A DNA stretch of 64,000 nt from Macrostomum lignano (GCA_002269645.1 NIVC01000001.1:310001-374000), one strand, 5' to 3'. Shown: positions 21,346 through 60,564, counted from the first letter of the stretch. The notes: a model not told the origin generated them from the letters alone. A program made the numbers and translations.

Positions 21346-21428
21346 CTGTAATACACTACGCGTACTGGGGCTCATAGTCCATAGTCACAATGCAGAACCT
21401 GAATGTTCTATGTAAGGGGAATTCGTAC

Positions 21429-21879
21429 CTCCTCGCCTCCTAGAGATGCAATCGTCCAGTCCTTCGAGCCTCGCCAGTAGAGACTGCCTCTCAAGGGTGA
21501 ACTTTAATCTCAGAAACTCGTATTGTCTAGCGGGTTCGCCCAGCGACAAGCTGATGAGCGTGAGGGAGGCATTCGGTACTCGGTAAATGTTCAGGCGCAG
21601 GTTCAGCCGGCCGTCCACCAGCCAGGCGTACAGAAACAGCGGCAAACCCGGCGATTTCACAGCTTCCTCGTCCTTCATCTCGCTATAGACAAGCAGTCCA
21701 GCTTCTCCTCGGCTGGGCGCGCTGAAGTCCAACTGCAGCGAGGCATTGGAGCAGGGCTGCCAGGCCGGCAGGGCCAGGTAGGCACTGCGGTTGCCGTTGA
21801 ATTCACCGACAAAAGCCGGCGATGCAGCTCCAAAGCAGCTGCGAATTGCCGCTGCCAGGCAGAGAAGGAACCTCAGCAT
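21429..21879 (-). CDS. Nrx-1: Neurexin-like gene, exon 1: signal peptide plus N-terminal part of laminin-G (LNS1) domain
   Basis: ATG at 21879 gives MLRFLLCLAAAIRSCFG (signal-like), then FNGNRSAYLALPAWQPCSNASLQLDF...GLLVYSE...LVDGRLNLRL, a neurexin LNS1 pattern. Donor GAG|GTACGA after 21429, phase 1. Confidence 0.8.
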
Positions 21880-22063
21880 CTCCAGCTGGTTTTCAATTGG
21901 GCTGTTGGCTCTGGCATGGTGAACGTTTGAGTCATCGTGCTCAGCTAGACTGCAGCAGATGTCCGTCTTTAGTGAATTCTATCTAGGCTAATAGAGCTTA
22001 CAGAGCTTTGCCCGCTGATATAAATGTAGAACTATAGCTGAATGGGGGAGCAAGTGAGCGAAG

Positions 22064-22090
22064 CTGATTGGCTGATGGCTCTGATTGGCT
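22064..22090 (-). promoter_or_regulatory. Two CCAAT boxes (AGCCAATCAG) upstream of the neurexin ATG
   Basis: ctgattggct at 22064-22073 and 22081-22090, about 185-210 bp upstream of the start codon; matches the NF-Y consensus. Confidence 0.45.
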
Positions 22091-28721: not shown

Positions 28722-29330
28722 TAGGCTAGATTAGCAATCCATTCCATTCCTGCACCCTTGTGGGCTAGATTAGCAATCCGTTCTATTCCTGCATCCTTGT
28801 GGGCTAGATTAGCAATCCATTCTACTCCTGCATCCTTGTGGGCTAGATTAGCAATCCATTCTATTCCTGCATCCTTGTGGGCTAGATTAGTAATCCATTC
28901 TATTCCTGCATCATTGTGGGCTAGATTAGCAATCCATTCTATTCCTACATCCTTGTGGGCTAGATTAGCAATCCATTCTATTCCTACATCCTTGTGGGCT
29001 AGATTAGCAGTCCATTCTATTCCTACATCCTTGTGGGCTAGATTAGCAATCCATTCTATTCCTGCATCCTTGTGGGCTAGATTAGCAATCCATTCTATTC
29101 CTACATCCTTGTGGGCTAGATTAGCAGTCCATTCTATTCCTACATCCTTGTGGGCTAGATTAGCAATCCATTCTATTCCTACATCCTTGTGGGCTAGATT
29201 AGCAATCCATTCTATTCCTACATCCTTGTGGGCTAGATTAGCAATCCATTCTATTCCTGCATCCTTGTGGGCTAGATTAGCAATCCATTCTATTCCTACA
29301 TCCTTGTGGGCTAGATTAGCAGTCCATATC
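28722..29330. repeat. Minisatellite, 39-bp unit (same family as 48125-48880)
   Basis: GGGCTAGATTAGCAATCCATTCTATTCCTGCATCCTTGT. Confidence 0.97.
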
Positions 29331-32694: not shown

Positions 32695-32700
32695 TATAAA
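32695..32700 (+). promoter_or_regulatory. TATA box of the heptad-protein gene
   Basis: TATAAA 80 bp upstream of the ATG. Confidence 0.4.
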
Positions 32701-32774
32701 TGAAAGCCTAAAATGCTGTCAAATCTGCAATTTCTTGCGTAGATTTCGACAACCATTTGAAAAATTCTCCAGAC

Positions 32775-33818
32775 ATGAAAGCCGCCGCACTGCTTTGCTG
32801 CCTGCTAGGCTTCACACTTGTGGCCTCTGGGCAGGGCCGGTACACCAGCTACGTTTCCTACCTGCCGTCGGCTAGTTGCTATCCGAGCCACTATGGTAGC
32901 TCTTATCGGAGCTCTTCTAGCTGGACCACCCACTACAGCTCCTACCGTCCAAGCTACAGCTCCTACCGTCCAAGCTACAGCTCCTACTACCCGAGCTACA
33001 GCTCCTACCGTCCAAGCTACAGCTCCTACTACCCGAGCTACAGCTCCTACCGTCCAAGCTACAGCTCCTACTACCCGAGCTACAGCTCCTACCGTCCAAG
33101 CTACAGCTCCTACCGTCCAAGCTACAGCTCCTACTACCCGAGCTACAGCTCCTACCGTCCAAGCTACAGCTCCTACTACCCGAGCTACAGCTCCTACCGT
33201 CCAAGCTACAGCTCCTACCGTCCAAGCTACAGCTCCTACTACCCGAGCTACAGCTCCTACCGTCCAAGCTACAGCTCCTACTACCCGAGCTACAGCTCCT
33301 ACCGTCCAAGCTACAGCTCCTACTACCCGAGCTACAGCTCCTATCGTCCAAGCTACAGCTCCTACTACCCGAGCTACAGCTCCTACCGTCCAAGCTACAG
33401 CTCCTACCGTCCAAGCTACAGCTCCTACTACCCGAGCTACAGCTCCTACCGTCCAAGCTACAGCTCCTACTACCCGAGCTACAGCTCCTACCGTCCAAGC
33501 TACAGCTCCTACCGTCCAAGCTACAGCTCCTACTACCCGAGCTACAGCTCCTACCGTCCAAGCTACAGCTCCTACTACCCGAGCTACAGCTCCTACCGTC
33601 CAAGCTACAGCTCCTACTACCCGAGCTACAGCTCCTACTACCCGAGCTACAGCTCCTACCGTCCAAGCTACAGCTCCTACTACCCGAGCTACAGCTCCTA
33701 CTACCCGAGCTACAGCTCCTACCGTCCAAGCTACAGCTCCTACTACCCGAGCTACAGCTCCTACTACCCGAGCTACAGCTCCTACCGTCCAAGCTACAGC
33801 TCCTACCGTCGTTACTAG
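32775..33818 (+). CDS. Secreted Tyr/Ser-rich tandem-heptad protein (YSSYRPS/YSSYYPS x41), 347 aa, unknown function
   Basis: ATG at 32775 (the ORF track starts at an upstream TTG). Signal peptide MKAAALLCCLLGFTLVASG, then a non-repetitive Tyr/Ser-rich linker of the same composition, a 21-bp repeat over 32934-33809, and a TAG stop right after the array. Confidence 0.8.
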   Translation: MKAAALLCCLLGFTLVASGQGRYTSYVSYLPSASCYPSHYGSSYRSSSSWTTHYSSYRPSYSSYRPSYSSYYPSYSSYRPSYSSYYPSYSSYRPSYSSYYPSYSSYRPSYSSYRPSYSSYYPSYSSYRPSYSSYYPSYSSYRPSYSSYRPSYSSYYPSYSSYRPSYSSYYPSYSSYRPSYSSYYPSYSSYRPSYSSYYPSYSSYRPSYSSYRPSYSSYYPSYSSYRPSYSSYYPSYSSYRPSYSSYRPSYSSYYPSYSSYRPSYSSYYPSYSSYRPSYSSYYPSYSSYYPSYSSYRPSYSSYYPSYSSYYPSYSSYRPSYSSYYPSYSSYYPSYSSYRPSYSSYRRY

Positions 33819-34664
33819 ACGACTACTGGTCATTCCATCTGCCATGCAAGGATTTCGTCGACTGAACACGGTTAAGGCGGTGTTGGATGAAAAAACTGTC
33901 AATCTATCGATAAAAAACGCTACAATCTTTGCGCTCTGCCACAAAAAGTTCAACTAGGAACCATCAGCAAAAATATAATAAGCTTGTGCGGCCATTGTTT
34001 GAGATCAGATAACACTACAGATGCATGACACATTTCTGTCTGATTCTTTTATTTATTCAAGTTGTCATTCACAATATTAGAAGAAATTTACAGGATATAG
34101 ACGAAAAGCTATAAAGCATTTCTGTTTTATCCGTACTGAGATTCCGAGAAACTAAAAAAGATACTAGCCATGATAAAGTTCCATGATAAAAGTTAAAAAA
34201 TGTCCACTTAATCTTCAATTGCTCGGGAAAAGCTTAAATTTGAATTTTCCATAGTTCGTCAAGACTACTTGCAGTAGAATATTCTGACCTCTATACTTTC
34301 CTGGTACTCAGGCATTTCGACAGTAAAAAAAACAATGAATTTGAAAACAATCTCTGAATTAAAAAATTCTTGCAAAATAATCTGGGCCTTCTTATTTATT
34401 TATTTATCGGTGATTAAATGTAAAATACATTTCTGAGAGGCGCATGGCCTCACATCTTGTGTCACTGCAGCGACATCAAGGAGGTTAGCATTGCACAGAC
34501 ACTGGACACTCTACTGCATGAAAAATACGAGTGGGTGATCGACAGTAAAAACTGAGGAGAAACCGAGTGCAGAGGCATTCAAAAGCTGCTACTGTATGCC
34601 AGAGAGGCTGCTATGGTCGCCTCTCTTCTGTTGGGAAACTCTGCAGGGAAAGAAGTCTCAGGAG

Positions 34665-35600
34665 CTACAGTTGCTCCCGCACGTGACGTCCTGAGCGACG
34701 TCCAGGCGCTACCGAAGTCGGCATCAGCGGCCTGCCGCCGCCAAGGCAGCCTGGCAGGGAGGCCCGAATCACCTGCTGAGCCTGATGCGGCTCCGTTGTC
34801 ACCTGGTGATGCATCGAGCCAGCGGGAGCCAGGCAGGACGACTGTTGGCTGGCCTTGGAGCACTGGCACGACTCGCACTGGCCACAGCCGACCAGCTCCA
34901 GCATCAGGTTCAGCCGGCTGACCACCACCTGCTGGAAATCGTTACTGCTGTTGGTGTGGTGCTGCTGGTGCTGAGGCTGAGGCTCAGAGAAGCTGGCATC
35001 CGGGCCCTGATCCCCAGACGAGAGCATCGGGATGCTGGAGTTCAACTTAGTGCTTGATGAGAAGACTGTCGGCTGGTATTCAGTCGTCATCTTGCCAACG
35101 CGCTGGTGCTGCTGAGGTAGCTGCTGCTGACGGCAGAACTCAGCTGCCTCTTGCTGCATCATGGACGGCACCTGCGGCAGTCGCTGCTGCTGCTGACGAC
35201 GCGACTGCGGCTTGCCGTTGGCTGTGACGGTGGGGCTGCGGCCGTACAGGGTGCTTTGAGGCTCGTCGAACTGAGCGCTTAGTGCAGTCGGATCGGCCCG
35301 GTTTCTGCCGGTAGTGGTCTGCGGTTGCTGCATACAGGTGTCTGGAACCGGAACCTTGCACGATCGCTGACTCTGCTTGTGTGCGCAACCCATGCTGGCC
35401 TTATTGGGTCTCTGCGGCTTCTGCTGCTGAATTTGCATCTCCATTTGCAGTTGCTGCTGCCTGCTGCGAGACTGTTTGCCGCCAGTGGCTCTGGGCTGGG
35501 GACTCTGATCGTACATGGAAATCTGCTGCTGCTGATGGAGGCGGCTGTTCCCACAGCTCCTGATGGCATCTTCTGAGACATTCGGATGTCGCTTCGGAAC
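34665..35600 (-). CDS. Gln/Ser-rich low-complexity protein, exon 2 (about 457 aa total)
   Basis: 86-nt intron ending TTCTGCAG|GTT joins in frame to the 34665-35516 ORF. CAG-rich codon usage like neighbouring genes; the true 3' end could be spliced earlier. Confidence 0.65.
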   Translation of the reverse strand, partial: VPKRHPNVSEDAIRSCGNSRLHQQQQISMYDQSPQPRATGGKQSRSRQQQLQMEMQIQQQKPQRPNKASMGCAHKQSQRSCKVPVPDTCMQQPQTTTGRNRADPTALSAQFDEPQSTLYGRSPTVTANGKPQSRRQQQQRLPQVPSMMQQEAAEFCRQQQLPQQHQRVGKMTTEYQPTVFSSSTKLNSSIPMLSSGDQGPDASFSEPQPQHQQHHTNSSNDFQQVVVSRLNLMLELVGCGQCESCQCSKASQQSSCLAPAGSMHHQVTTEPHQAQQVIRASLPGCLGGGRPLMPTSVAPGRRSGRHVREQL

Positions 35601-35686
35601 CTGCAGAAGTTAGGTTAGAGGTTAGGAGCACAGATACTTCAAGCTTCAGTGTAAATGCAAACTGCATCTGATTTACACGTACTTAC

Positions 35687-36124
35687 CCGAACTTCTAGTG
35701 GAGGATTCTCCAGTGAGCTGCAGTCGCTCTCTTCATTTGAAGACGGTCCTATTGGGTCATTGGCGCTGACGTACTCGACTGGAACTTTACTGCAGGTTCG
35801 CTGCGTTTGCTGGGCTTGCATATCGGATGGCTGCTGCTGATGCATCCTTGACAACGCGGTCTGTCTCTGGTGGAACTGCTGCTGCCACTGCTGAGGCTGT
35901 TGCTGTTTCTGCTGCAGATGTTGGCGCCTGCAGCTGGAAGTGACAACTGATGCCGACTTCTTCGATTTGTAGATCTTTTGAGGCTCCATACTGTACTGAT
36001 CGCCGCTATCCATCGGCCTCATCGGAGGCTGGTAGCTGCTGTCTTCGTCATCGTAGGCATCGTCATCCATCGGGCTGGCACAGTGGTATTGCTGATGCGT
36101 CATCGGCGACATTGATGGCTGCAT
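35687..36124 (-). CDS. Gln/Ser-rich low-complexity protein, exon 1
   Basis: CACCATGC start; 146 codons; donor CGG|GTAAGT, phase 0. Confidence 0.7.
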
Positions 36125-37905: not shown

Positions 37906-39089
37906 TAGACAAAACTAAGTTGCACTAGACAGGTGAAATTTTGAGGTTGAGCATGTATGATTATAATATAAAAGCAAAGATTTATATTATAATATATTAT
38001 TGAATTATTTTATTATATAGCTAGGTTTAATAATGTATATAAAAAGTCCAATAAGTCTTATATGCTAGTTACTATGCTAAAAAACCACAATAATTTGTTT
38101 ATTATGTTCTTATTATACAAAACCTTTGTATGCCAATATTAATATTTGACTTTTTAAGTATGCTTAGTCTAAGCTAAGTCAGAAATAACAAAAAATGTTG
38201 TATAGTATATATGTATATTTAAAAATATATAATTTATGACTAGACTTTGTATTATATTCTAGGCTATTTATAAGCATTAACTTCAAGATTTCATTAATAT
38301 TAATAGATTATTAATATCATACATGTACAACCTCCCTGATTTATACTAGTTGCGCAACTTACTTTTTGACCTAAAATGTGACTTACCTATGAAAGAAACT
38401 CTAAAGCCAAATTAATATACCATCTTGGGTAAACAAAGACTAACTATGATTATATAATTGGGGCTAAATGCCTTACTATCTAATTAGCACTATGTCTATT
38501 TTCTTGGGTGGGCATTTTTGACTTACCTTGACTAAGCCCCTTGCTAGCTGGTAGATTGGCTAGGTCAACTAACTGTTGCACATGTATAATTAAAATTATA
38601 ATTTTTATGATTTCTCTATAATTTTAGTTACATCTATTAAATTAAACAAATATAAAAAACAAACATATAATAAGGCAAAAAAGCAAAACAACAATGAAAG
38701 AAAGCCAGTATAATATTTGTTGTTGTGTATTTCTTGAGCTTTTGCCATAATTTAGTTGTTAAAACCACAATAGAGTTCATTTTTGTTGTATTTATTAAGC
38801 TTTTCTTTGACAAAGTCTCTAATTTTTAAAGTAGTATCGATAATATGAGCATATCAACTATTTTTTAGGTTTAAAAATGAGTAGCATAATAGAACTGCCA
38901 TTTTGACAGCCAACATGCACCTAGAGGCAACTTGGCTTATTTGTATTGTATAATCTGGCACCGCAGTGCAGTCTTCTTAAAAAAATGACTGCAAAGTGTG
39001 CCGCTTAGTTTTTGCTTACACTTGTCAACTGGTTAGCTAGTGTTGAGCAGTTGTGTGGCTTCTATTCATGCCTCCAGCCACGCCAACCA

Positions 39090-39724
39090 ATGTCGCGCTC
39101 CTGTCGACGCAGTCGCGGCGGAGGAGGGCCGGCGGGCAGCAGCGCCGCTGATAATGTCGGCGGCGGCAGAGGCTCCGTTGTCTTTGCAATGCGCGACTTC
39201 TTTCGTCAGATTGGCAGCAGCGGCAGCGGAGACAGCAGAAAGCGGTCTAAAAAGTCAACAGCTTCAGCACCGTCAGGCCCAGCCAGCAGCAGCAGCGCCG
39301 CTGTCCCCGGACCTTCAGGATTGTCCACAGCCGCCGCCGCCGCTGCCGCCAATTCAGCGTCAAGCGACTCCATCGCATCCGGATGCCCCGAGCAGCGCCG
39401 GAGTCCAGCCGCCGCATTCGCGGACATCGCCGGCCTGGTGGAGTGTCCGGTGTGCACCGAGAGCCTGCCGCTGGCCCAGTTCCCTCCTATGCTGCTGGAC
39501 TGCGACCACTTCGCCTGCCACGCCTGCCTGCGCACCAGCCTGCGCCTCTGCATCTCCGAAGGTCTGCCGGCCACCTGCCTGTCCTGCAACAACCGGCTGC
39601 ACCCGGCCGATGTGGATTCCATCGTTGACGAAGAGCGGCTCCGGCTGAAGTACGAGCAGTTCACCCTGCGCCGCGTGCTGGCCGCCGATCCTGACTGCCG
39701 CTGGTGCCCGGCGCCCGACTGCAA
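39090..39724 (+). CDS. RNF19A: RBR E3 ubiquitin ligase RNF19-like, exon 1 (RING1 and start of IBR)
   Basis: CPVCTESL...CDHFACHACL...CLSC (RING1) and LRRVLAADPDCRWCPAPDC; donor AA|GTGAGC, phase 2. Confidence 0.92.
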
Positions 39725-39779
39725 GTGAGCGATGCGGCTGTTCGCTGCCTTCGAACTGCAGAATTTCCCCTGTCTCAGC

Positions 39780-40105
39780 CTCAGTTGCTGGGCCCCCTCC
39801 AGCCTCCCAGATCCTTAGTTGCTGAGCTAGCCTTATAGATCCTCAGTTGCTGGGCCACCGTCCCCATCTCAGATCCCCAGTTGCTGGGCCAGCCTCCCAG
39901 ATCCTCAGTTGCTGTGCCAGCCTCCCAGATCCTCAGTTGCTTGGCCAGCCTCCCAGATCCCCAGTTGCTGGGCCAGCCTCCCAGATCCTCAGTTGCTGTG
40001 CCAGCCTCCCAGATCCTCAGTTGCTTGGCCACCCTCCCCAGATCCTCAGTTGCTGGGTCAGCCTCCCAGATCCTCAGTTGCTGGGCCAGCCTCCCAGATC
40101 CTCAG
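39780..40105. repeat. Minisatellite, 28-bp unit (RNF19 intron 1)
   Basis: GGGCCAGCCTCCCAGATCCTCAGTTGCT. Confidence 0.95.
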
Positions 40106-40175
40106 CTGTTCAGTGCACCGGCAAGCAACCCATTCTCACCGCGGCGGTTCGCACTGGCCTTCTTCCCCATCGCAG

Positions 40176-40728
40176 ATACGCGGTCATCGCCACTGGCTGC
40201 GCCAGCTGTCCCCAACTCCAGTGCCCGGTTTGCCGCATCCAGTTCTGCTACCACTGCAAGACCGAATGGCATCCCAGCACCACGTGCGAGCAGGCCAGGA
40301 TCGAGCGCCAGACGGCCGAAGTGCTGGCGGCCGCCAGGGCTGGCGCAGACATCCTGTCCCTGTCCTCGCGCTCGGAGTCCATCGCTGAAATCAAGCAGTG
40401 CCCCCGCTGCGCCACCTACATTACCAAGGAGAATGACGGCAGCTGCAACCACATGCGCTGCAAGATGTGCGGCTCAGAATTCTGCTGGCTATGCCGAAAG
40501 GAGATCACGGATCTGCACTATCTCAGCCCCAGCGGCTGCACTTTCTGGGGCAAGAAGCCCTGGTCTAGGAAGAAGAAAATCCTTTGGCAGCTGGGAACTC
40601 TGATTGGCGCTCCCATTGGTATAGCACTGCTGGCCGGCCTGGCTGTGCCAGCCATCACCATGGGTGTCCCGGTCTGGGTTGGTCAGCAGGTTAACAATAG
40701 ACTGAAGCGGGGCGATGGACTGCTTCGG
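40176..40728 (+). CDS. RNF19A: RNF19-like, exon 2 (IBR, RING2, TM1)
   Basis: [12 protein letters not shown]...FCYHCK.EWH...C; CPRC...[57 protein letters not shown], a near-diagnostic RNF19 motif. Catalytic SCNH present. Donor CGG|GTGAGT. Confidence 0.95.
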
Positions 40729-40744
40729 GTGAGTGCTTTGGTGT

Positions 40745-41920
40745 ACTTTAATCCCCGATCCTCCAGTTCCGCTTCAATCCCCGATCCTCCAGTTCCGCTT
40801 CAATCCCCGATCCTTCAGTTCCGCTTCAATCCCCGATCCTTCAGTTCCGCTCCAATCCCCGATCCTTCAGTTCCGCTTCAATCCCCGATCCTTCAGTTCC
40901 GCTCCAATCCCCAATCCTTCAGTTCCGCTCCAATCCCCGATCCTTCAGTTCCACTTCAATCCCCGATCCTTCAGTTCCGCTTCAATCCCCGATCCTTCAG
41001 TTCCACTTCAATCCCCGATCCTTCAGTTCCGCTTCAATCCCCGATCCTTCAGTTCCGCTTCAGTCCCCGATCCTTCAGTTCCGCTTCAATCCCCGATCCT
41101 TCAGTTCCGCTTCAATCCCCGATCCTTCAGTTCCGCTTCAATCCCCGATCCTTCAGTTCCACTTCAATCCCCGATCCTTCAGTTCCACTTTAATCCCCGA
41201 TCCTTCAGTTCCGCTTCAATCCCCGATCCTTCAGTTCTACTTCAATCCCCGATCCTTCAGTTCCACTTCAATCCCCGATCCTTCAGTTCCACTTTAATCC
41301 CCGATCCTTCAGTTCCACTTCAATCCCCGATCCTTCAGTTCTACTTCAATCCCCGATCCTTCAGTTCTACTTCAATCCCCGATCCTTCAGTTCTACTTCA
41401 ATCCCCGATCCTTCAGTTCCGCTTCAATCCCCGATCCTTCAGTTCTACTTCAATCCCCGATCCTTCAGTTCCACTTCAATCCCCGATCCTTCAGTTCCAC
41501 TTCAATCCCCGATCCTTCAGTTCCGCTTCAATCCCCGATCCTTCAGTTCTACTTCAATCCCCGATCCTTCAGTTCCACTTCAATCCCCGATCCTTCAGTT
41601 CCACTTCAATCCCCGATCCTTCAGTTCTACTTCAATCCCCGATCCTTCAGTTCCACTTCAATACCCGATCCTTCAGTTCCGCTTTAATCCCCGATCCTTC
41701 AGTTCCGCTTTAATCCCCGATCCTTCAGTTCCACTTCAATCCCCGATCCTTCAGTTCCGCTTCAATCCCCGATCCTTCAGTTCCGCTTTAATCCCCGATC
41801 CTTCAGTTCCACTTCAATCCCCGATCCTTCAGTTCCGCTCCAATCCCCGATCCTTCAGTTCCACTTCAATCCCCGATCCTTCAGTTCTACTTCAATCCCC
41901 GATCCTTCAGTTCCGCTTCA
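40745..41920. repeat. Minisatellite, 26-bp unit (RNF19 intron 2)
   Basis: TTCAATCCCCGATCCTTCAGTTCCGC. Confidence 0.97.
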
Positions 41921-42230
41921 GTCACCTGAATCAATCAGCCTCAGTCACCTGAATCAATCAGCCTCAGTCACCTGAATCAATCAGCCTCAGTCACCTGAAT
42001 CAATCAGCCTCAGTCACCTGAATCAATCAGCCTCAGTCACCTGAATCAATCAGCCTCAGTCACCTGAATCAATCAGCCTCAGTCACCTGAATCAATCAGC
42101 CTCAGTCACCTGAATCAATCAGCCTCAGTCACCTGAATCAATCAGCCTCAGTCACCTGAATCAATCAGCCTCAGTCACCTGAATCAATCAGCCTCAGTCA
42201 CCTGAATCAATCAGCCTCAGTCACCTGAAT
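41918..42230. repeat. Minisatellite, 23-bp unit, perfect copies (RNF19 intron 2)
   Basis: TCAGTCACCTGAATCAATCAGCC. Confidence 0.97.
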
Positions 42231-42253
42231 CCCAGCAACCCCTCTGCCCTAAG

Positions 42254-43207
42254 CAGCGCAGCCGGGCCAGACGGCACTGCCTAGTAACTGTGGCTGTGTG
42301 CGGCAGCGCCCTCCTATCGCCGGTAGTAGCGGTGCTCAGCGTGGGAGTGTCGGTGCCGATCCTGCTGGCCTACGTGTACGGCGTGGTCCCCGTGTCGCTG
42401 TGCCGCTCCAACGGCTGCGGCATCCTGCAGGATGAGGATACCGAATACGACGACGAAGACATGGAGCTCCACGGCACTGCGGATGCCGACCAGGGCCTGT
42501 CGTTCAGCAGTCCAAGCGGCTCAAGGCCCGTCGTAGACCTGATGGCGGGGCATCGCGGAGGCGGCGCCGGCGGGAATTCCTTTGCCGCCGGCTCGACATC
42601 AGGCGCCGTGGCCCCGGCGGCATCTGTGGAACGCGATCTGGCCAGCGGCTGCTCGCAGGCAGACTCGCAGACCGAGGAGTCCATCAGCCTGGTGCTGGTG
42701 TCCTCCGGCCGTGAGGCCAAAGTTGCCGCCGCCGGTGCCGCCGCCTCGGCCGCTGCGGTCGCCCTGCAGCAGCAGAAAAAGCAGAATCTGCAACAGAAAT
42801 TGAAAAAGCAGCAATGGGAGGACGAGTCGCACGGCCCGCTGCTGCTGCAGGACCAGCAGTCTGACGGATCCAATTCTATCGTATCCTTCAGCCTCGTTGC
42901 CAGCGGCTGCAGCTCCGGCCGGCAGCGCCATCCCGCATCTTCATCGTCAAGATGTCACCAGCAGCATCATCAGCATCATCATCATCAACAGCAGCAGCAG
43001 ATGACTCAAGCAGAAGTCCTGGCCCATAATCAGCACTGTTCCAATGCCAACTCGGCAACAGGAGCATCAGCTGCTGCCACTGGCTGTCGCGTTGGCAGCT
43101 TTGAATCGCTTGACGATAAGCGCAGTTGCTCTCTGTCTGTGTACACCGTGGACACTAACGATGCGAGCATGCTGGGACTGACTGGCAGCATTGCGGGCGG
43201 TCGGTGA
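42254..43207 (+). CDS. RNF19A: RNF19-like, exon 3 (TM2 and low-complexity tail)
   Basis: Acceptor CCCTAAG|CAG; SPVVAVLSVGVSVPILLAYVYGVVPVSLCRSNGCG matches RNF19 TM2; TGA at 43205-43207. Confidence 0.9.
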   Translation, partial: QRSRARRHCLVTVAVCGSALLSPVVAVLSVGVSVPILLAYVYGVVPVSLCRSNGCGILQDEDTEYDDEDMELHGTADADQGLSFSSPSGSRPVVDLMAGHRGGGAGGNSFAAGSTSGAVAPAASVERDLASGCSQADSQTEESISLVLVSSGREAKVAAAGAAASAAAVALQQQKKQNLQQKLKKQQWEDESHGPLLLQDQQSDGSNSIVSFSLVASGCSSGRQRHPASSSSRCHQQHHQHHHHQQQQQMTQAEVLAHNQHCSNANSATGASAAATGCRVGSFESLDDKRSCSLSVYTVDTNDASMLGLTGSIAGGR

Positions 43208-44500: not shown

Positions 44501-44559
44501 GCTGGAGTCCGGGACTGAATTGATAGTGCGATCTAATGCGTGTAATTTACCGAATAAAT

Positions 44560-45018
44560 CCTCAGTTGCTGGGCCAGCCTCCCAGATCCTCAGTTGCTGG
44601 GTCAGCCTCCCAGATCCTCAGTTGCTGGGTCAGCCTCCCAGATCCTCAGTTGCTGGGCCAGCCTCCCAGATCCTCAGTTGCTGGGCCAGCCTCCCAGATC
44701 CCCACTTGCTGGGCCACCAACCTCCCAGATCCTCAGTTGCTGGGCCAGCCTCCCAGATCCTCAGTTGCTGGGCCAGCCTTCCAGATCCTCAGTTGCTGGG
44801 TCAGCCTCCCAGATCCTCAGTTGCTGGGCCAGCCTCCCAGATCCTCAGTTGCTGGGTCAGCCTCCCAGATCCTCAGTTGCTGGGCCAGCCTCTCAGATCC
44901 CCAGTTGCTGAGCCAGCCTCCCAGATCCCCAGTTGCTGGGCCAGCCTCCCAGATCCTCAGTTGCTGGGTCAGCCTCCCAGATCCTCAGTTGCTGGCCCAG
45001 CCTCCCAGATCCTCAGTT
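44560..45018. repeat. Minisatellite, 28-bp unit (same family as RNF19 intron 1)
   Basis: Same consensus unit and orientation as 39780-40105. Confidence 0.95.
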
Positions 45019-45514
45019 GTAAATTTGTAAGCCACTGAGATCTGCTGCTATTATTTGTGCAATTTGTAATTAAGTGTAGCAATTTTTTGCTTGATTTGCA
45101 ACTTTTCGATGTTTACTATTAGTAGTGTGTGCGTTGCGCGTTGATTAAATAAAGTGCGAGTTAAAAATATATTGCATATTGAACAGCGATAATAGTTGGG
45201 TTGAGTCATGCTTCGCATTTGTCTATATTATCACCTGCGTTCTGATTAGCCCATCTAGTTGATCCATCCTTGTTGTGTCTACAATGCGTCCGCAGTATCA
45301 TGCTTATAAACTGTTGAAATTGGATTTTTTCATTTTTTCAGATTTTCTCGCAAGGTTAACAAGCGAAATTCGGGTATATGTTTATGACTAGTATATTTAT
45401 ATATTTACCTGCGAGTAATTCCTGTAAAACATTTTCTATGCTACAACTGCTTGCTTTTTACAAAGCAATGAGATTTTTTCAAATGGATAATTCAGGGTGT
45501 CTGCTTTGTCAACC

Positions 45515-48057: not shown

Positions 48058-48124
48058 GTTGGGAAAGCTTTTTTAGCGCAACTTTGCTGGGTCATGCCGT
48101 TTTTAGGTTATCCTGACTACAAGT

Positions 48125-48880
48125 AGATTAGCAATCCATTCTATTCCTGCATCCTCATTGGCTAGATTAGCAATCCATTCTATTCCTGCATCCTCATTGG
48201 CTAGATTAGCAATCCATTCTATTCCTGCATCCTCATTGGCTAGATTAGCAATCCATTCTATTCCTGCATCCTTGTGGGCTAGATTAGCAATCCATTCTAT
48301 TTCTGCATCCTTGTGGGCTAGATTAGCAATCCATTCTATTCCTGCATCCTTGTGGGCTAGATTAGCAATCCATTCTATTCCTGCATCCTTGTGGGCTAGA
48401 TTAGCAATCCATTCTATTCCTGCATCCTTGTGGGCTAGATTAGCAATCCATTCTATTCCTGCATCCTTGTGGGCTAGATTAGCAATCCATTCTATTCCTG
48501 CACCCTTGTGGGCTAGATTAGCAATCCATTCTATTCCTGCATCCTTGTGGGCTAGATTAGGAATCCATTCTATTCCTGCATCCTTGTGGGCTAGATTAGC
48601 AATCCATTCTATTCCTGCACCCTTGTGGGCTAGATTAGCAATCCATTCTATTCCTGCATCCTTGTGGGCTAGATTAGCAATCCATTCTATTCCTGCATCC
48701 TTGTGGGCTAGATTAGCAATCCATTCTATTCCTGCACCCTTGTGGGCTAGATTAGCAATCCATTCTATTCCTGCACCCTTGTGGGCTAGATTAGCAATCC
48801 ATTCTATTCCTGCATCCTTGTGGGCTAGATTAGCAATCCATTCTATTCCTGCATCCTCATTAGCTAGATTAGCAATCCAA
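48125..48880. repeat. Minisatellite, 39-bp unit (same family as 28722-29330)
   Basis: Same consensus and orientation. Confidence 0.97.
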
Positions 48881-48910
48881 TCTGCTGTATCCCACCTGTC
48901 GTGCTTGCAG

Positions 48911-50864: not shown

Positions 50865-51975
50865 AGCTTCCAGCCAATCAGAGACCAGGGTGAAACAGGA
50901 GGTACGATAGCCAATCAGAGCAGTGTGAAACAGAAAAGATATCCCAGCCAATCAGAGCATAGAGTAAGACAGGTGAGATATCCCAGCCAATCAGAGCACA
51001 GTGAGACAAGTGAGATATCCCAGCCAATCAGAGCACAGAGTGAGACAGGTGATATATCCCATCCAATCAGAGCACAGAGTAAGACAGGTGAGATATCCCA
51101 GCCAATCAGAGCACAGAGTGAGACAGGTGATATATCCCAGCCAATCAGAGCACAGAGTGAGACAGGTGATATATCCCATCCAATCAGAGCACAGAGTGAG
51201 ACAGGTGATATATCCCATCCAATCAGAGCACAGAGTAAGACAGGTGATATATCCCATCCAATCAGAGCACAGAGTAAGACAGGTGATATATCCCATCCAA
51301 TCAGAGCACAGAGTGAGACAGGTGATATATCCCAGCCAATCAGAGCACAGAGTGAGACAGGTGATATATCCCATTCAATCAGAGCACAGAGTGAGACAGG
51401 TGATATACCCCATCCAATCAGAGCACAGAGTGAGACAGGTGAGATATTGCAGCCAATCAGAGCACAGAGTGAGACAGGTGATATATCCCAGCCAATCAGA
51501 GCACAGAGTGAGACAGGTGAGATATTGCAGCCAATCAGAGCACAGAGTGAGACAGGTGATATATCCCAGCCAATCAGAGCACAGAGTGAGACAGGTGATA
51601 TATCCCATCCAATCAGAGCACAGAGTGAGACAGGTGATATATCCCATTCAATCAGAGCACAGAGTGAGACATGTGATATACCCCATCCAATCAGAGCACA
51701 GAGTGAGACAGGTGAGATATTGCAGCCAATCAGAGCACAGAGTGAGACAGGTGATATATCCCAGCCAATCAGAGCACAGAGTGAGACAGGTGAGATATTG
51801 CAGCCAATCAGAGCACAGAGTGAGACAGGTGATATATCCCAGCCAATCAGAGCACAGAGTGAGACAGGTGAGATATTGCAGCCAATCAGAGCACAGAGTG
51901 AGACAGGTGAGATATTGCAGCCAATCAGAGCACAGAGTGAGAAGTGAGACAGGTGAGATATTACAGCCAATCAGA
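50865..51975. repeat. Minisatellite, 39-bp unit containing CCAATCAGAG
   Basis: CAGCCAATCAGAGCACAGAGTGAGACAGGTGATATATCC, about 27 copies. Confidence 0.97.
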
Positions 51976-53158: not shown

Positions 53159-54041
53159 CGGTGGCTCATATTTTGCAAAGGTTTGAGTTCCAAAATCGGT
53201 CAGCCCCACAGATACTAGAATAACTACTAGATAGACCATTCAGCACATTTGCGTGCCAGCTACTTTCAGTAGTAAGTTAAACTGAAGCATTTTGATGTAT
53301 TTTTTAAAGACAAGGCTTATTTATTGGCTCTTACCCTCAAGCTTAAACCCTCCGACTCTATACAGAGCTTCTACCCCTGCCCGCCACCCAATTTTTATTG
53401 CCTTCCCAAATCTGTTCATTTCAGTGGCTAATGTACATTATGATGGCTAGCTGAACCAATTACCAATTAATTAAGCTTGGGCTTCTAAACTTATCAAAGT
53501 CATTTAAGCTGCCTTTATTTTTATAAAATAGCTTACGTGTTCTTCATTGCTACTGAACTGAAAGTAGAAAGCTGTTTTTGTGTATTATTTGTGTCTGAGT
53601 ATTTGTGTCTGAGTGGCCCATTTAGTTATTTTAGTATCTGTGGTCAGCCCTTTAATTATCTCACTGCTGTCTACTGACTGCTAATGCATAGAATAAGTTA
53701 CGACTTTTAGCATCATAACTTCATATGAGCCTAATTATAACTTAAACAGTAATTATAACTTAATTATAACTTAATTGTAACTTAAACAGCTGGGTGAACT
53801 GAAGCGATGCGGAGTTAAGTGTCTTGCTCAAGGCCACAAATTATCCCGAGTGGGTCGAGAATCGAACCCCCGACCTTCCAGTCGCGAGTCCGACGCTCTA
53901 ACCACTAGGCTACAACCCCCACTTCATTACAAGCGTAATTTGCACTATAGGACATTGAAGTTGTTCGCTGTATTTATTGGGAATAAAAATGTAAGGGCCG
54001 ACCGATTTAAAATTGAAACCTTTGCAAAATATGAGCCACCC
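53159..54041. mobile_element. Non-autonomous Tc1/mariner-type DNA element (MITE), about 883 bp
   Basis: Imperfect ~50-bp terminal inverted repeats with a 25-bp identical core GGTGGCTCATATTTTGCAAAGGTTT. TA directly flanks both ends (53157-58 and 54042-43). AT-rich non-coding interior. Confidence 0.75.
53730..53919 (-). mobile_element. tRNA-derived SINE with a CORE-like body, nested in the MITE
   Basis: Head GGTTGTAGCCTAGTGGTTAGAGCG (A box) ... GGTTCGATTCTCGACCC (B box), then TGTGGCCTTGAGCAAGACACTTAAC...CTTCAGTT and a simple-repeat tail (AGTTATAATTA)n. Confidence 0.75.
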
Positions 54042-54098: not shown

Positions 54099-54461
54099 TC
54101 ACGCCTCCGTTTCCCCGGCGCCGCCACCGCCCGCGTCCTCCAGCAGCCGCAGTGGGATCGGCACCGACTTCAACTGCGTCGCGTCGCGCTGGAATGCCAG
54201 CCGAATTGGCTGCATCTGCTTGACGTCGATGAACAGAGCTTTGGGATCGCGCTGTTGCTGCTGCCGCTGCTGGTGGAGCTCCCTGATCCGAGCTTCCACC
54301 CTGGCGATGAAGTCCGCGCTCACCTTTTGATCGAAGTCATCGTGCGAATTGTACATCTCTAGCAGCTTCTTCACCTGCCCTGGCGCCAGCAGGTTCGTTG
54401 TAGTTGCTATGGTTACAGCATCCTCTGCTGTCTGCTTGTTGGCCTGGAGCAGCTGGCAGGC
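54099..54461 (-). CDS. Myo5: Myosin V last exon (DIL C-terminus)
   Basis: ACACAG|GCC; ACQLLQANK...LAPGQVKKLLEMY...FDQKVSADFI; TGA stop. Confidence 0.9.
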   Translation of the reverse strand, partial: ACQLLQANKQTAEDAVTIATTTNLLAPGQVKKLLEMYNSHDDFDQKVSADFIARVEARIRELHQQRQQQQRDPKALFIDVKQMQPIRLAFQRDATQLKSVPIPLRLLEDAGGGGAGETEA

Positions 54462-54529
54462 CTGTGTGCGGAGCGGCGGCATTGCAGGGCTGTTTTCGTG
54501 CGTTGATTATGCAATTTGAATTTTCAAAA

Positions 54530-54950
54530 TGAAGTAGGACGGCGGATTTTGTAGGGAGAATTTTAGTAGGGGCGGATTTTCTAAAACTTAGCCGGAAGAG
54601 GGGGCGGATTTTGTAGGATGAAGCCATATTAGGGGGGGGGTTTCTAGGATGAAGCCATATTAGGGGGGGGGGTTTCTAGGATGAAGCCATATTAGGGGGG
54701 GGTTTCTAGGATGAAGCCATATTAGGGGGGCGGATTTTGTAAGATTAAGCCATATTAGGGGGGCGGATTTTGTAAGATGAAGCCATATTAGGGGGGCGGT
54801 TTTGTAGGATGAAGCCATATTAGGGGGGCGGTTTTGTAAGATGAAGCCGGATTGGGGTGGGGGCGGATTTTGTAAGATGAAGCCGGATTGGGGTGGGGGC
54901 GGATTTTGTAAGATGAAGCCGGATTGGGGGCGGATTTTGTAGTGTAAGGA
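54530..54950. repeat. ~33-bp minisatellite with G-runs (last myosin intron)
   Basis: GGATTTTGTAGGATGAAGCCATATTAGGGGGG. Confidence 0.9.
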
Positions 54951-54987
54951 GTGAAGCTGTGCACACGGTAGAGGGCGGATTTATTAC

Positions 54988-55197
54988 CTGGACCAGCGGC
55001 TCCAATGCGGTCAGTGCAGCGGAGACGTCCAGCTCTCGCAGGGCGGACTCCAGCTGCGACAGGCAGTAGCGCAGCTGCATACCCCGGGACCAATGGCACA
55101 GCTCCCGCCGCAGCATCAGCTGATTGAAGCAGTGGCCGCACAGCCAGCGCAAAGTTTGCTCAACCAGCTGGGCGAGGGCCTCGTCCGGCAGTCCGGC
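54988..55197 (-). CDS. Myo5: Myosin V Dilute (DIL) domain exon
   Basis: TTTCAG|GCC ... CAG|GTAATA; FNQLMLRRELCHWSRGMQLRYCLSQLE...LEPLVQ. Confidence 0.92.
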
Positions 55198-55688
55198 CTG
55201 AAATTGCGCAATAGCAGAGATTCTCTGGTGAGCACAGAGATCAGAGACCTGCACCGGGCAGCTGCCAATGCCCGATGAAGACGGTACCAAGGTAGCACAG
55301 GTAAAATGGGAGAAAAGTGACTCCAGACGACTTTCAAACGACGGTACAAGTCGCTAAGAAGTAGTTAGAGTCGCTTTTGAATCGCTGAGTTGCGTCTTAA
55401 GCGCATCTGCAACGTCACTTTATGAATAAGAATCGCATTTCGCAATCATAAAAACTCTATTTAGTCTACTTGAGTTAGTAGACACTTTAGCGCTAACACA
55501 ACGACTCTTGGGCGGCTTTTTCACGACTCTTTAACGATTCTGCAGCTCACGTGATGCCCTCGTGACTCAACAGTCGCCTCTCAGTCGCACTGCAGTCGTT
55601 TGAGTCGTTAAAGAGTCAAAAGAGTCGCTAGAGTCACTGGTGAGTGTATTGCAATGACTCCTTAGCGATTCGATCTTGTCACGGTATG

Positions 55689-55790
55689 CTCAGTGAAGTG
55701 TACATGCCTAACGATAAATAAAGTTAGGGCCGCTGTACACTCCTGTGTGACTGCGTACGTATCCGCGCGCTTGTGTGCCTGCTCAGGGGA
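55689..55790 (+). mobile_element. SINE family B core fragment in a myosin intron
   Basis: 54/60 nt identical to 15743-15802 by manual alignment. Confidence 0.6.
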
Positions 55791-56364
55791 GTCGGCGGAA
55801 TGGGCAGGTTGTGAGACAATTAAGGACCACTGTACTCGTAGCATCACAGGATTTGTAATTAAATTGCTGCATTCAGGTACTGTTAAGTTCATAACTCGTA
55901 GTTCCATTTCAATGCATATTAGTAGATATTCCTAGACCTTTCTAAATAATTAAATGCAATTAAATAAAAGTCTCCAAATATTAATTTTTCATATTGTTGC
56001 TCACCTAGTCTTTAGAAAGCCATTAGAAGGCCAATTTTTAAGCCGAGGCCTTGCTTAAGGCTAAGATCGAACATTTTGATTACAAATATACTCGATTTAG
56101 GACGCAACAAAACAAAAATGTTAATCTTCACTGCCCCAGATCAAATGCGATCATTGATTTTATGATAAAAATGATCTGTCCCATCTCCGCAGTGTATTTT
56201 TTCCACGCAGGAAAGTGCCTTCTAAAAATTACACTATCTTTGAGTTTCACGTTCTGTTTATACTACAGTGGTCCTTGGTAACAATGTGCCTAAAGTGCGC
56301 AAGGGTGCACACAGCCCCCCCCCCAGTCTCCATTCTCCATTAAAAACAGACAGGTGCGCCTCAC

Positions 56365-56742
56365 CTGTCTAGCGCAGCGCACGAGCTCGCAGCAGCGCTG
56401 GCTGATAGTCTCAAACGCGGCTCGGCACTTCTCCTGGTCCGGCCGCTTCTTCATGACGTTCGGCAGGCCGGGAATGGCGTCAAACTCCAGCAGGCCGAGC
56501 ACCAGGGTCTGCGAGGGCAGGCTCCGCTGCATGGCGACGCACACCTGCTGGTAGCACCACACGCTCAGCTCGTGGAAGCTTGTCTGAAAGTCTTCGAGAT
56601 CGAATCGGTTCAGCTGAAGGTCGCGCTCCTCCTCGGTGTTGTCGGCTGAGTACTGCTCGATGCCGCCGTACTGACGGAGAAGGTTCAGCAGCCGGTGACA
56701 GCAGGACAGCACCAGCAACTGGCCGGAGAGGTCTTTGGCTTG
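56365..56742 (-). CDS. Myo5: Myosin V globular tail exon
   Basis: CAACAG|CAA ... CAG|GTGAGG; HRLLNLLRQYGG...LNRFDLEDF...LLEFDAIPGL. Confidence 0.9.
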
Positions 56743-57039
56743 CTGTTGTCCACGACAATGAAAATATAGGTCAAATTAATTTACAATTGATAATAAAAAA
56801 CCAAGTATTGCTAAGGAAAAGGCGACATTCTATCTTGTGACTTCTTAGGCCTACAGATATTAGAATAATCTAGATATGCCGCTTGTAGGATATGCTTTTC
56901 AGCAGTCAAATTCGCGTTTCTTCCCATTATCTTTTATTTCTAAAGAGAGAAGAGTACTTGGCGCCCTAACCCCAACCACCAGCCAGGCCGATAACACAGT
57001 TTGGCTTTCCTCTTGCCCGCTTGTGTCTGACTCTCCTTA

Positions 57040-57250
57040 CTGCTCTCTCATTGGCTGAGCTAGATTGGGCCTGCCCCCCCACTAGGCTTGGTTCCGTCCG
57101 TCTGACTTTGACATCTCTCCATGCTGCTCTCTCATTGGCTGAGCTAGATTGGGCCTGCCCCCCCACTAGGCTGGGTTTCATCCGTCTGACTTTGATATCT
57201 CTCCATGCTGCTCTCTCATTGGCTGAGCCAGATTGGGCCTGCCCCCTAGG
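57040..57250. repeat. 84-bp tandem duplication, about 2.5 copies
   Basis: CTCTCTCATTGGCTGAGCTAGATTGGGCCTGCCCCCC recurs at about 57043, 57127 and 57211. Confidence 0.9.
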
Positions 57251-57659
57251 CTGTCTTGTCTGTCTTGCATTCACTTGTGTACATTGTGTTAAATGTTTGT
57301 TGTTCATTCTTGACCCCATGCTCCCGAGGCCAAAAAGAAAGGAAAGAAATTTTTTAAGTAACACCGTGCAGACAAACTACTGAAAAAGACTAGAAGCTCT
57401 ACTTTTCACAACTTCAATTGCAAGTGACATATTTAGATATTCTCTTGCATCTATGGTTGAAGATTTTTAAACATAGACAAAGACAATTCTCTCTTTTAGC
57501 CATGGTTTCAACCATAGACAAATCGAAAAATCGATACGTCAAATCTGGATTGATTTTTCCTATAGTTTAGCTCGCAATATGCAATATGTGATATGTGAAA
57601 ACTTTAACCACAGCCCAAAAGTTCTGCCCACTCCAAAAGCATTGAATATTGCATTATAC

Positions 57660-57938
57660 CTTGCAGTGCTCCCGCCAGGCCTGAACAGTCTGTGACAGCA
57701 GGTGCTCTACAATCTTGTCCTGCTTGTTGGCGTCGCACCAGCGAACTGCGCAGAAGATGAGGTAGGGCGCGTGGCCAGGCTCCTCCAGCTTCAGCACCGA
57801 CCTGGCGAGCTCCGCCGCCTTCTCCATGCTGGGCACGGGGATCAGCGCCTGGTGATCCGTCTCGTTGAGCGCCAGGTCCGAGTGCCGCCTCAGGCGCTTG
57901 TTCTCCGATTCAAAGCGCTCGTTCTCCGCGCGGAGCTC
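57660..57938 (-). CDS. Myo5: Myosin V exon: start of globular tail
   Basis: CCCCAG|GAG ... AAG|GTATAA; APYLIFCAVRWCDANKQDKIVEHLL resembles the myosin V 'PAYILFMCIRHADY.NDD' motif. Confidence 0.9.
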
Positions 57939-57954
57939 CTGGGGGGGGGGGGGA

Positions 57955-58225
57955 AGGAGGATGTCTGAGGATGTGGCAAGGTGTCTGAAGATGTGGCAGG
58001 GTGTCTGAGGATGTGGCAAGGTGTCTGAGGATGTAGCAAGGTGTCTGAGGATGTGGCAGGGTGTCTGAGGATGTGGCAGGGTGTCTGAGGATGTGGCAAG
58101 GTGTCTGAGGATGTAGCAAGGTGTCTGAGGATGTAGCAAGGTGTCTGAGGATGTGGCAGGGTGTTTGAGGATGTGACAAGGTATCTGGGGTGTGATAGAA
58201 TGTCTGGGGATGTGGTAGTGTCTGG
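57955..58225. repeat. Minisatellite, 20-bp unit
   Basis: GTGTCTGAGGATGTGGCAAG. Confidence 0.95.
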
Positions 58226-58239
58226 GAAGGGCTACTCAC

Positions 58240-58668
58240 CAAATTCTCTTCCAGAATTCTCGCAAGCTCAAACTTCACAACGGAGTCAGCGCTGTCCAAA
58301 GCGGACGAACTGAGCAGGGAGTTCATCTGAGTGAGCAGTTTATGCTGCCGGCCCTTGTCATTCTCCAGCTGCTCAATGATTCGAGTTTTGCCGTTCAGCT
58401 TCTCCATGAGCTCGTCCAGCTCATTCTGCAGTCGCCGATTCACCTGCTGCAGAGTCTGGTAGGCCGTCTCCAGCTCACCGTCCTCGTTCAGCAGCTCCGA
58501 GTTGCCGCCGTAGCGCTCGCTGACCAGCTGGTCACCGATGGCGGCCTTCAGCCGGAGACACTCCTCGCGGCGGACCTCGAGCTCCTGGCGGAGGCTGTCC
58601 AGCTGCTGCATCACCGCCTCCTTGCCGCCCACGCCTTTCAGAGCCGCTGATTGGAGCGTTTTCAGCTC
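58240..58668 (-). CDS. Myo5: Myosin V coiled-coil exon
   Basis: CTCCAG|GAG ... TTG|GTGAGT; LEVRREECLRLK and ELLNEDGELETAYQTLQQVNRRL resemble the myosin V medial tail. Confidence 0.9.
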
Positions 58669-58741
58669 CTGGAGAATTTTTCGAAACGCTTTTGTTCAGT
58701 AAATCGATTGACAAATCGAAAAGCATTAATAATTTAGGCAG

Positions 58742-59295
58742 ACTTCCAGCCAATCAGAGATCAGCTGTTACGAGTTATGTAGGGGAATACTGTCAGCCAA
58801 TCAAAGATGAGCTATGATATAGGCAAAGATTTCCAGCCAATCAAAGATCAGCTAGGATGTAGGAGAAGACTTCCAGCCAATCAAAGATCAGCTATGAATA
58901 GGCAAATACTTTCAGCCAATCAGAGATCAGCTATGATACAGGCAAAGATTTTAAGCTAATCAGAGATCAGCTATGATATAGGCAAAGACTTCCAGCCAAT
59001 CAGAGATCAGCTATGATATAGGAAAAGACGTCCAGCCAATCAGAGATCAGCTATGATGTAGGAGAATACTACCAGCCAATCATAGATTAGCTATGATATA
59101 TGCAGACTTTCAGCAAATCAGAGATCAGCTATGATATAGGCAAAGACTTCCAGCCAATCAGAGATTAGCTGTGATATGGGCAAAGACTTCTAGCCAATCA
59201 GAGATCAGCTATGATGTACGCTCGTAGTAGAATACTGCCAGCCAATCAGATATCAGTAGTATGTAGTAGAATACTGCCAGCCAACAGAGATCAGT
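58742..59295. repeat. Minisatellite, 40-bp unit containing CAGCCAATCAGAG
   Basis: TTCCAGCCAATCAGAGATCAGCTATGATATAGGCAAAGAC. Confidence 0.93.
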
Positions 59296-59300
59296 AGTAC

Positions 59301-60085: not shown

Positions 60086-60108
60086 GCAGTTTGACGCTAA
60101 AAACTCAC

Positions 60109-60514: not shown

Positions 60515-60564
60515 CTGAAGGACAGCGGCGACAGGTGATTCAGCTTTGAAGGCTAGTTTATGAG

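Follow-up and report, generated by a model that had tools for sequence, protein, structure and literature searches.

The DNA analyzed here is a 64,000-nt stretch from Macrostomum lignano (GCA_002269645.1, NIVC01000001.1:310001-374000), referred to below as the window, and is metazoan nuclear DNA. We investigated an open reading frame (ORF) on its plus strand that is formed largely by a tandem array of 21-nt units, each of which encodes a heptad of the form YSSYRPS or YSSYYPS. The ORF runs from an ATG at 32775 to a TAG at 33816-33818 (1044 nt, 347 codons) and is laid out as MKAAALLCCLLGFTLVASG, QGRYTSYVSYLPSASCYPSHYGSSYRSSSSWTTH, 41 exact heptads and a final YSSYRRY followed by the stop. The original prediction had described a signal-peptide-like start, a single-Cys linker, 41 heptads and a YSSYRRY end at this position, and our translation agrees with it. 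The features of the locus are as follows.

32695..32700, plus strand: TATAAA box, the only one in the 500 nt upstream of the ORF and 80 nt before its ATG
32719..32725, plus strand: initiator-like TCAAATC (A at 32721), a motif match only, 26 nt past the first T of the TATA box
32775..33818, plus strand: single-exon candidate coding sequence of 347 codons plus TAG, with the ATG in the context GACATGA (A at -3)
32775..32831, plus strand: signal-peptide-like segment MKAAALLCCLLGFTLVASG, with a Lys-containing n-region, a hydrophobic core and A-S-G at -3..-1
32832..32933, plus strand: linker QGRYTSYVSYLPSASCYPSHYGSSYRSSSSWTTH, made up of decayed heptad copies (YVSYLPS, [Y]GSSYRS)
32934..33794, plus strand: heptad array of 41 exact 21-nt units, in the order RRYRYRYRRYRYRRYRYRYRYRRYRYRRYRYRYYRYYRYYR
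33795..33818, plus strand: terminal variant heptad YSSYRRY plus TAG, from the translation
33972..33977, plus strand: AATATA, a weak candidate for a variant polyadenylation hexamer, 154 nt past the stop and followed by GT-rich sequence

Exact counting gave 22 copies of YSSYRPS and 19 of YSSYYPS, and the repeat part is composed of 35.4% Tyr, 42.5% Ser, 13.9% Pro and 8.2% Arg, with no acidic residues, in agreement with the figures given earlier (22 and 19 heptads, about 35% Tyr and about 43% Ser). At the DNA level, TACAGCTCCTACCGTCCAAGC occurs 21 times and TACAGCTCCTACTACCCGAGC 19 times; the one remaining unit carries a silent TAC>TAT change, which is the sole point variant in the array. The two main unit types are one whole codon (CGT/TAC) and a silent CCA/CCG difference apart. 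Tandem Repeats Finder called the array at 32933-33810 with periods of 42, 63 and 105 nt, corresponding to higher-order patterns, at scores of about 1300. No decayed repeat copies were observed 3' of the terminal YSSYRRY heptad. On the 5' side, the linker of 34 residues is rich in Tyr and Ser and contains C35, the sole Cys of the mature protein, besides which two Cys are found in the signal-like segment. Runs of Ser are 2 residues long in the repeats, and the longest run anywhere, SSSS, lies in the linker. A tandem array of this kind lies far outside what chance would give, which cannot be said of the open frame over it, since the period is 21 nt and five of the six frames are open. The case for a gene thus rests on the flanks and not on the ORF itself, because openness over a 21-bp array is uninformative.

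Coding status of the heptad frame

Since 40% of the window is minisatellite, a fortuitous ORF is a serious rival to a gene, a point that had not been weighed in the original prediction. According to this explanation, the array is a non-coding intergenic minisatellite, and it is by coincidence, in an array-saturated genome, that an ORF, its hydrophobic start and a TATA box are found there. We counted 43 tandem arrays in the window, 13 of which have a period divisible by 3, and the purity of the heptad array is like that of intronic arrays, for instance, the one at 41918-42231, which is 100% pure. These observations, together with the five open frames, favor a non-coding array. We nevertheless regard it as doubtful, though possible: independent features of low probability share one frame, namely, the TATAAA box with an initiator, the signal-like start and the first ATG.

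TATAAA occurs in the window at a density of 4.3e-4 per nt per strand, which corresponds to a chance of about 2% within a 50-nt promoter-appropriate interval. Judged from these motifs, the region of 32721 is a putative transcription start, which would leave a 5' untranslated region of about 54 nt. ATGs at 32700 and 32713 precede this presumed start site, and the ATG of the ORF is the first after it. The encoded N terminus carries a Lys in the n-region, an uncharged hydrophobic run of 15 to 17 residues and A-S-G before Gln20. Written as MK-AAALLCCLLGFTLV-ASG/Q, it fits the classical pattern of a basic n-region, an h-region of 8 or more residues and small residues at -3 and -1. A crude signal-peptide test was passed by 9 of 172 ATG ORFs (5%), the heptad ORF included. 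Among the ORFs that span any of the 43 arrays, the heptad ORF alone has a signal-peptide-like start, and its hydrophobic run is the longest.

Codon usage was compared with a reference made of 10 exons or exon parts of neighboring genes (1671 codons), in which the GC content of third codon positions (GC3) is 0.75, 90% of the Tyr codons are TAC and the top Ser codons are AGC and TCC. Frame 0, that of the heptad ORF, has the highest GC3, with values of 5/7 and 7/7 for the repeat units, and its units use TAC, AGC and TCC, the Tyr and Ser codons preferred by the neighbors; both properties argue against a non-coding array. Read in the frame that gives TAPTVQA, the units have a GC3 of 2/7 and 1/7. 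Over the 53 unique N-terminal codons, the log-odds score was +2.2 bits in frame 0 and -17.8 and -21.7 bits in the other frames. The unique flanks of rival ATG ORFs scored -0.14 to -1.0 bits per codon, with GC3 values of 0.23-0.47.

The same measurements bear on the possibility that the +1 frame is the coding one. Starting from an ATG at 32893, this frame would give MVALIGALLAGPP, then (TAPTVQA/TAPTTRA)n and a 47-residue tail to 33957, that is, a Thr/Ala/Pro mucin-like protein. In its favor, it has an ATG, a weakly hydrophobic N terminus and an open stretch of 354 amino acids, such Thr/Pro-rich repeats are frequent among mucins, and Pfam returned a match (E = 5e-20) to a herpesvirus glycoprotein model in its Thr/Pro-rich part. 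However, this match is purely compositional and provides an example of how arrays create false annotations. The GC3 of the +1 frame is 0.23 in the N-terminal flank, 0.47 in the tail and 1-2 of 7 in the repeat, compared to 0.75 in the neighbors, it scores -0.62 and -0.37 bits per codon in codon log-odds, and on the predicted mRNA, its ATG comes second, after one in good context. Translation of the +1 frame is, in our judgment, very improbable.

A further line of evidence was obtained from the linker. The alignment of linker DNA with the repeat units beat 299 of 300 shuffles, and its gaps (-4/+1, +6 and +6 nt) are net in frame. The linker segment YVSYLPS is identical to the heptad at 5 of 7 amino acids but at 12 of 21 nucleotides, and includes a TCG-for-AGC serine. 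Another segment, AGC TCT TAT CGG, differs from the repeat sequence AGC TCC TAC CGT at synonymous third positions only. As read from this alignment, the linker consists of old, decayed repeat copies, with frame-preserving indels and largely synonymous differences. That the decayed 5' copies keep the frame, and that the array ends within 8 codons of the stop without decayed copies downstream, both argue against a non-coding minisatellite.

Homology searches were carried out at several levels. Word-index phmmer with the whole protein (5.8 G proteins) gave no significant match among the best 8000 candidates; the N terminus plus two heptads, searched against the same index, gave one candidate and no match at E <= 10. 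An exhaustive phmmer search of 1.84 G representatives returned 771 matches at E <= 0.001. Nineteen of these were inspected, and all were unrelated period-7 low-complexity ORFs (SGVPNQS, PSYDDCS, SYTSYHM, YRPSHRG and others) that had neither the heptad nor the N terminus. Spurious heptad ORFs arising from minisatellites are common in public protein sets, which again favors a non-coding array. A bacterial ORF with WRPTLxH repeats and 23% identity, found in a metagenome scan, was judged unrelated. No exact-sequence record was found for the heptad ORF or for two neighboring ORFs, the Pfam-A scan of the frame-0 protein at E <= 10 gave 0 families, and a full-text literature search for the heptad and its permutations yielded no relevant paper. 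The original prediction had recognized no known family and had proposed a HMMER search of the N terminus; neither that search nor the other homology, Pfam and full-text searches produced a relative, as far as their matches were inspected. The absence of homologues and of an exact record speaks for a non-coding array, but it carries little weight there and is likewise weak evidence for a young gene, because even the conserved exon of an RNF19-like gene in the same window (see below) has no relative above about 61% identity.

The only matches among sequences in the PDB were the carboxy-terminal domains (CTDs) of RPB1 (E = 3e-11, with a 46-bit score and a 154-bit bias), in which PSYS is in register over about 30 heptads. 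Indeed, the heptad has the same period as the RNA polymerase II CTD repeat YSPTSPS and is identical to it at Y1, S2, P6 and S7. The original prediction had attributed these four matches to probable convergence; the matches were confirmed, and the similarity is convergent, one of period and composition. The identities, and the fact that RPB1 CTDs are the only solved-structure matches, would be expected of a secreted CTD mimic that engages CTD-binding proteins, an idea to which we attach next to no probability. The CTD code is defined by the dipeptides Ser2-Pro3 and Ser5-Pro6. Both Ser-Pro dipeptides are missing from the heptad, in which Ser occupies position 3 and Arg or Tyr position 5. Moreover, the bias, compared to the score, points to periodicity and composition, a signal peptide would direct the product out of the cell, and the DNA is a young minisatellite and no copy of an RPB1 gene: the ORF stands alone, with its signal-peptide-like start and no RPB1 sequence upstream. 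From its sequence, the CTD match is a periodic PSYS coincidence.

Several observations weigh against a gene in frame 0. The signal-peptide test is crude and passes 5% of ORFs, and no canonical AATAAA was found within 880 nt, both of which also fit a non-coding array. The AG dinucleotides at 32741-32742 and 32770-32771 are possible splice acceptors, so that an upstream exon is possible. The homogeneity of the heptad array matches that of non-coding arrays. The N-terminal codon score amounts to 0.04 bits per codon, which is lower than that of known exons (0.27-0.82) and is reached by 10% of random 53-codon windows, and two codons of the array, CGT for Arg (3% of Arg codons) and CCA for Pro (10% of Pro codons), are rare in the neighbors. 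No orthologue was found in the databases searched. Frame 0 and gene status are favored, if unproven: the promoter, the codon usage and the pattern of linker divergence back the frame chosen in the original prediction, and on this sequence evidence we estimate the probability that frame 0 is a real gene as roughly two in three.

Predicted protein and its possible role

Our preferred reading, which we hold tentatively and at somewhat below even confidence, is that the ORF encodes an intron-less, lineage-restricted secreted polycation that coacervates via Tyr/Arg contacts and hardens when its Tyr are oxidatively coupled. The predicted mature chain has 328 amino acids, a mass of 39.4 kDa, a pI of 9.45 and a net charge of about +26. 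It is composed of 33.5% Tyr (110 Tyr), 41.5% Ser, 13% Pro and 8% Arg (26 Arg), with one Cys and no acidic residues. Motif counts gave 41 [G/S]Y[G/S], 22 [K/R]PSY, 44 S-x-S and 0 Tyr-X-Tyr, and Pro residues are never consecutive. In an AlphaFold2 single-sequence model, the predicted local distance difference test score was 36 throughout, except for a signal helix at residues 4-17. The mature protein is thus predicted to be intrinsically disordered, and a Pro in every heptad speaks against helical or sheet structure.

From sequence features, we infer how the protein would be secreted, condense and become cross-linked, and what its biological role would be. Removal of the 19-residue signal peptide would release a secreted, disordered polycation of about 39 kDa. 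Its repeat region would be very recent, the product of a 21-bp minisatellite that expanded in frame out of an older Tyr/Ser-rich coding sequence, which survives as the linker. One Pro per heptad would keep the chain extended and unfolded, and the 110 Tyr and 26 Arg could act as stickers through aromatic-aromatic and Arg-aromatic contacts, giving rise to a dense liquid phase. Tyr oxidation, either by tyrosinase to 3,4-dihydroxyphenylalanine (DOPA) and quinone or by peroxidase to dityrosine, could then yield an insoluble matrix, and the single Cys could form a disulphide-linked dimer. The product would be the precursor of an extracellular structural or adhesive material, such as a coat, an envelope or a cement.

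Each type of chemistry has a published counterpart. Phase separation of low-complexity domains is driven primarily by Tyr and Arg (PMC10888811). The decapeptide AKPSYPPTYK of mussel MFP-1 carries DOPA, recombinant MFP-1 self-coacervates via cation-pi contacts, and resilin is set through dityrosine cross-links (PMC9999432). Trematode eggshells harden via Tyr/DOPA (PMC11727788). Together with the composition and the predicted disorder, this chemistry of Tyr-based materials makes a cross-linkable or coacervating structural material plausible. Other points tell against such a role: the proposed function is drawn wholly from composition, the window contains no tyrosinase or peroxidase gene, and the Tyr-X-Tyr motif of extensin-type cross-linking is absent. 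The assignments offered in the original prediction, namely, an eggshell, cement, rhabdite or glue component, found no support, and the trematode eggshell (TES) domain is absent.

The main functional rival to a Tyr-based mechanism is modification of Ser. In that case, the protein would also be secreted, but the serines would be the working groups, either heavily O-glycosylated, as in mucins, at Ser next to Pro, or phosphorylated during passage through the secretory pathway, so that a polyampholyte or polyanion binds Ca/Mg or mineral and Tyr oxidation is secondary or absent. Such a protein would resemble sandcastle-worm Pc-3 or biomineral matrix proteins, and the 41% Ser content, the 44 S-x-S spacings, the Pro-Ser in each heptad and the predicted disorder are in line with it. 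The Pc-3B protein is built of phospho-Ser blocks split by single Tyr and undergoes complex coacervation (PMC9999432); like the heptad protein in its proposed role, it is a secreted Ser/Tyr low-complexity cement precursor that acts by coacervation. However, its Ser blocks are 6-12 residues long with a single Tyr (PMC9999432), whereas Ser runs in the repeats of the heptad protein are 2 long, the repeats contain no Thr, Tyr reaches 35%, the repeats also include Arg and Pro, and before any modification the chain is a polycation. No acidic residue is available to prime phosphorylation of the S-x-E/pS type. Moreover, Tyr at 35% is the most extreme feature of the repeat and is conserved in the decayed copies. 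A role based on Ser is an unlikely alternative in our estimation.

We then compared the heptad protein, read as a Tyr-based material, with other known systems. Like MFP-1, it is basic, disordered and, by prediction, secreted, with short Pro-containing tandem repeats and two or more Tyr per unit, and the basic-Pro-Ser-Tyr tetrapeptide [K/R]PSY is common to both (22 copies in the heptad protein). Unlike MFP-1, which is recognized by its tandem decapeptide (or hexapeptide variants) with Lys, Hyp and DOPA, it is built of heptads, has Arg in place of Lys, contains no Thr, Ala or Pro-Pro in the repeat and is made up of 41% Ser and 35% Tyr; neither the word-index search nor the inspected matches of the exhaustive search revealed sequence homology. 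The prion-like domains of the FUS family are similar in their [G/S]Y[G/S] triplets (41 in the heptad protein) with Ser spacers, in predicted disorder and in the use of Tyr/Arg as drivers (PMC10888811). In contrast to the heptad protein, FUS-type domains are intracellular, Gly/Gln-rich and irregular, without Pro periodicity; the heptad protein has a signal-like peptide, Pro at every seventh position, repeats without Gly or Gln, and Tyr and Arg in one chain. It also contains no RNA-binding domain (Pfam-A, E <= 10). By analogy, the heptad protein may work like MFP-1 or like a FUS-type sticker-spacer domain, while being a member of neither group.

Two other groups of secreted proteins were also compared. 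The TES/vitelline eggshell precursors are secreted Tyr-containing proteins that coalesce and are hardened through Tyr/DOPA (PMC11727788), as the heptad protein would be in its proposed role. Trematode eggshell proteins are, however, of about 29 kDa, with a conserved TES domain (IPR012615) and 12-15% Tyr (PMC11727788), whereas the heptad protein has no TES domain, 33% Tyr and pure heptads. With respect to this comparison, the neighboring genes of the heptad ORF gave no flatworm affinity in database matches. Plant extensins and the extensin-like regions of eggshells have secreted Ser/Pro/Tyr-rich repeats whose Tyr are cross-linked by peroxidase (PMC11727788), and a similar cross-linking might apply to the heptad protein. 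Extensins carry Ser-Pro(3-5) blocks and Tyr-X-Tyr motifs; the heptad protein has neither and contains a single Pro per unit.

A bolder version, which we consider possible but hold with considerable doubt, is that a young, real gene is observed here, in a genome whose introns and intergenic DNA are filled with minisatellites. Within a small gene for a secreted Tyr/Ser-rich protein, a 21-bp minisatellite would have grown in frame and given rise to a 41-heptad extracellular sticker polymer. With about 1 Tyr in 3 residues, its Tyr density would be among the highest recorded, and it would represent a new type of self-coacervating, oxidatively curable precursor. If expressed, the protein would add a very simple design to the Tyr-based extracellular materials of mussels, sandcastle worms, fluke eggshells and resilin: four amino acids in a strict heptad, no Lys, Gly, His or acidic residue, and both Tyr and Arg stickers on one chain. 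This simplicity would make it a handy minimal system for studying phase separation outside the cell and the oxidative curing that follows. If this version is true, a minisatellite-rich genome can make a structural protein in a short evolutionary time, and the locus would be a clean case of a structural protein born via minisatellite dynamics. There would also be a practical consequence. Trypsin would hardly cut the heptad protein, because Pro follows each repeat Arg, and chymotrypsin would shred it; standard proteomic surveys of glues and egg coats systematically overlook such proteins. Should there be no expression, the locus provides a cautionary example of a convincing ORF on a minisatellite.

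Neighboring genes and repeat arrays

Two conserved genes were identified in the window.

39012-43207, plus strand: RNF19A/B-like RBR E3 ubiquitin ligase gene, with Pfam IBR domains
54099-61722, minus strand: tail half of a class V myosin, with six IQ motifs (61102-61722), a coiled coil and a DIL/globular tail (DIL at 54099-54482)

The RNF19-like gene has only two introns across RING1-IBR-RING2-TM and a long low-complexity C-terminal exon with His/Gln runs. The closest relatives of its conserved exon are about 60% identical, in a fish and a midge alike, and none in the database exceeds about 61%. The myosin-V tail is rather divergent, with 93 bits over 187 amino acids in comparison to human MYO5A; the (GTAA)n tract at the end of the window would separate it from the motor domain. 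Introns of both genes have canonical GT-AG ends. Three introns, at 39799-40105, 40745-42231 and 60562-61105, have an unusual make-up, consisting almost wholly of one or two minisatellite arrays; a search of the literature for introns of this type gave nothing informative.

Two Gln-rich ORFs of 283 and 161 amino acids lie at 34665-36124 on the minus strand, convergent with the heptad ORF. They have no Pfam domain and no database record, and are probably exons of an uncharacterized low-complexity protein. Another signal-peptide-like start (MLRFLLCLAAAIRSCFG...) opens a first exon at 21385-21879, also on the minus strand. To the eye, the sequence of this exon resembled a laminin-G (LamG)/pentraxin-type domain, but no Pfam match was obtained for it at E <= 0.01. 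Just 5' of the ATG of this LamG-like gene, at about 22060-22090 on the minus strand, the motif CCAATCAG occurs twice.

The translations of ORFs at 53850-53930 and 5343-5400 start with GRESNPRP... and RRESNQ..., respectively, which corresponds to translated tRNA-like DNA. ARAGORN found no tRNA genes in the window, and there were no Rfam matches in it; the two stretches are possibly remnants of tRNA-derived short interspersed nuclear elements. The window contains no telomere-type repeats. A scan for bacterial promoters and terminators was set aside, since the DNA is eukaryotic.

The micro- and minisatellites of the window have periods of 4-84 nt and include the very long tracts (TCTA)~346, (GTAA)~389 and (CTAT)~161. 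In the arrays at 50909-51942, 58794-59299 and 59778-60094, a CCAAT-box-like motif (AGCCAATCAGAG or CCAATTGG), the one also present twice 5' of the LamG-like gene, is repeated perfectly, in up to about 27 copies; from their sequence, these are possibly arrays of NF-Y-type sites. Finally, two pairs of arrays share the same unit when rotation is allowed (a 39-mer and a 28-mer) and lie about 20 and 5 kb apart, at 28724-29327 and 48124-48883 and at 39799-40105 and 44558-45019. The shared units suggest dispersed minisatellite families or local duplication.

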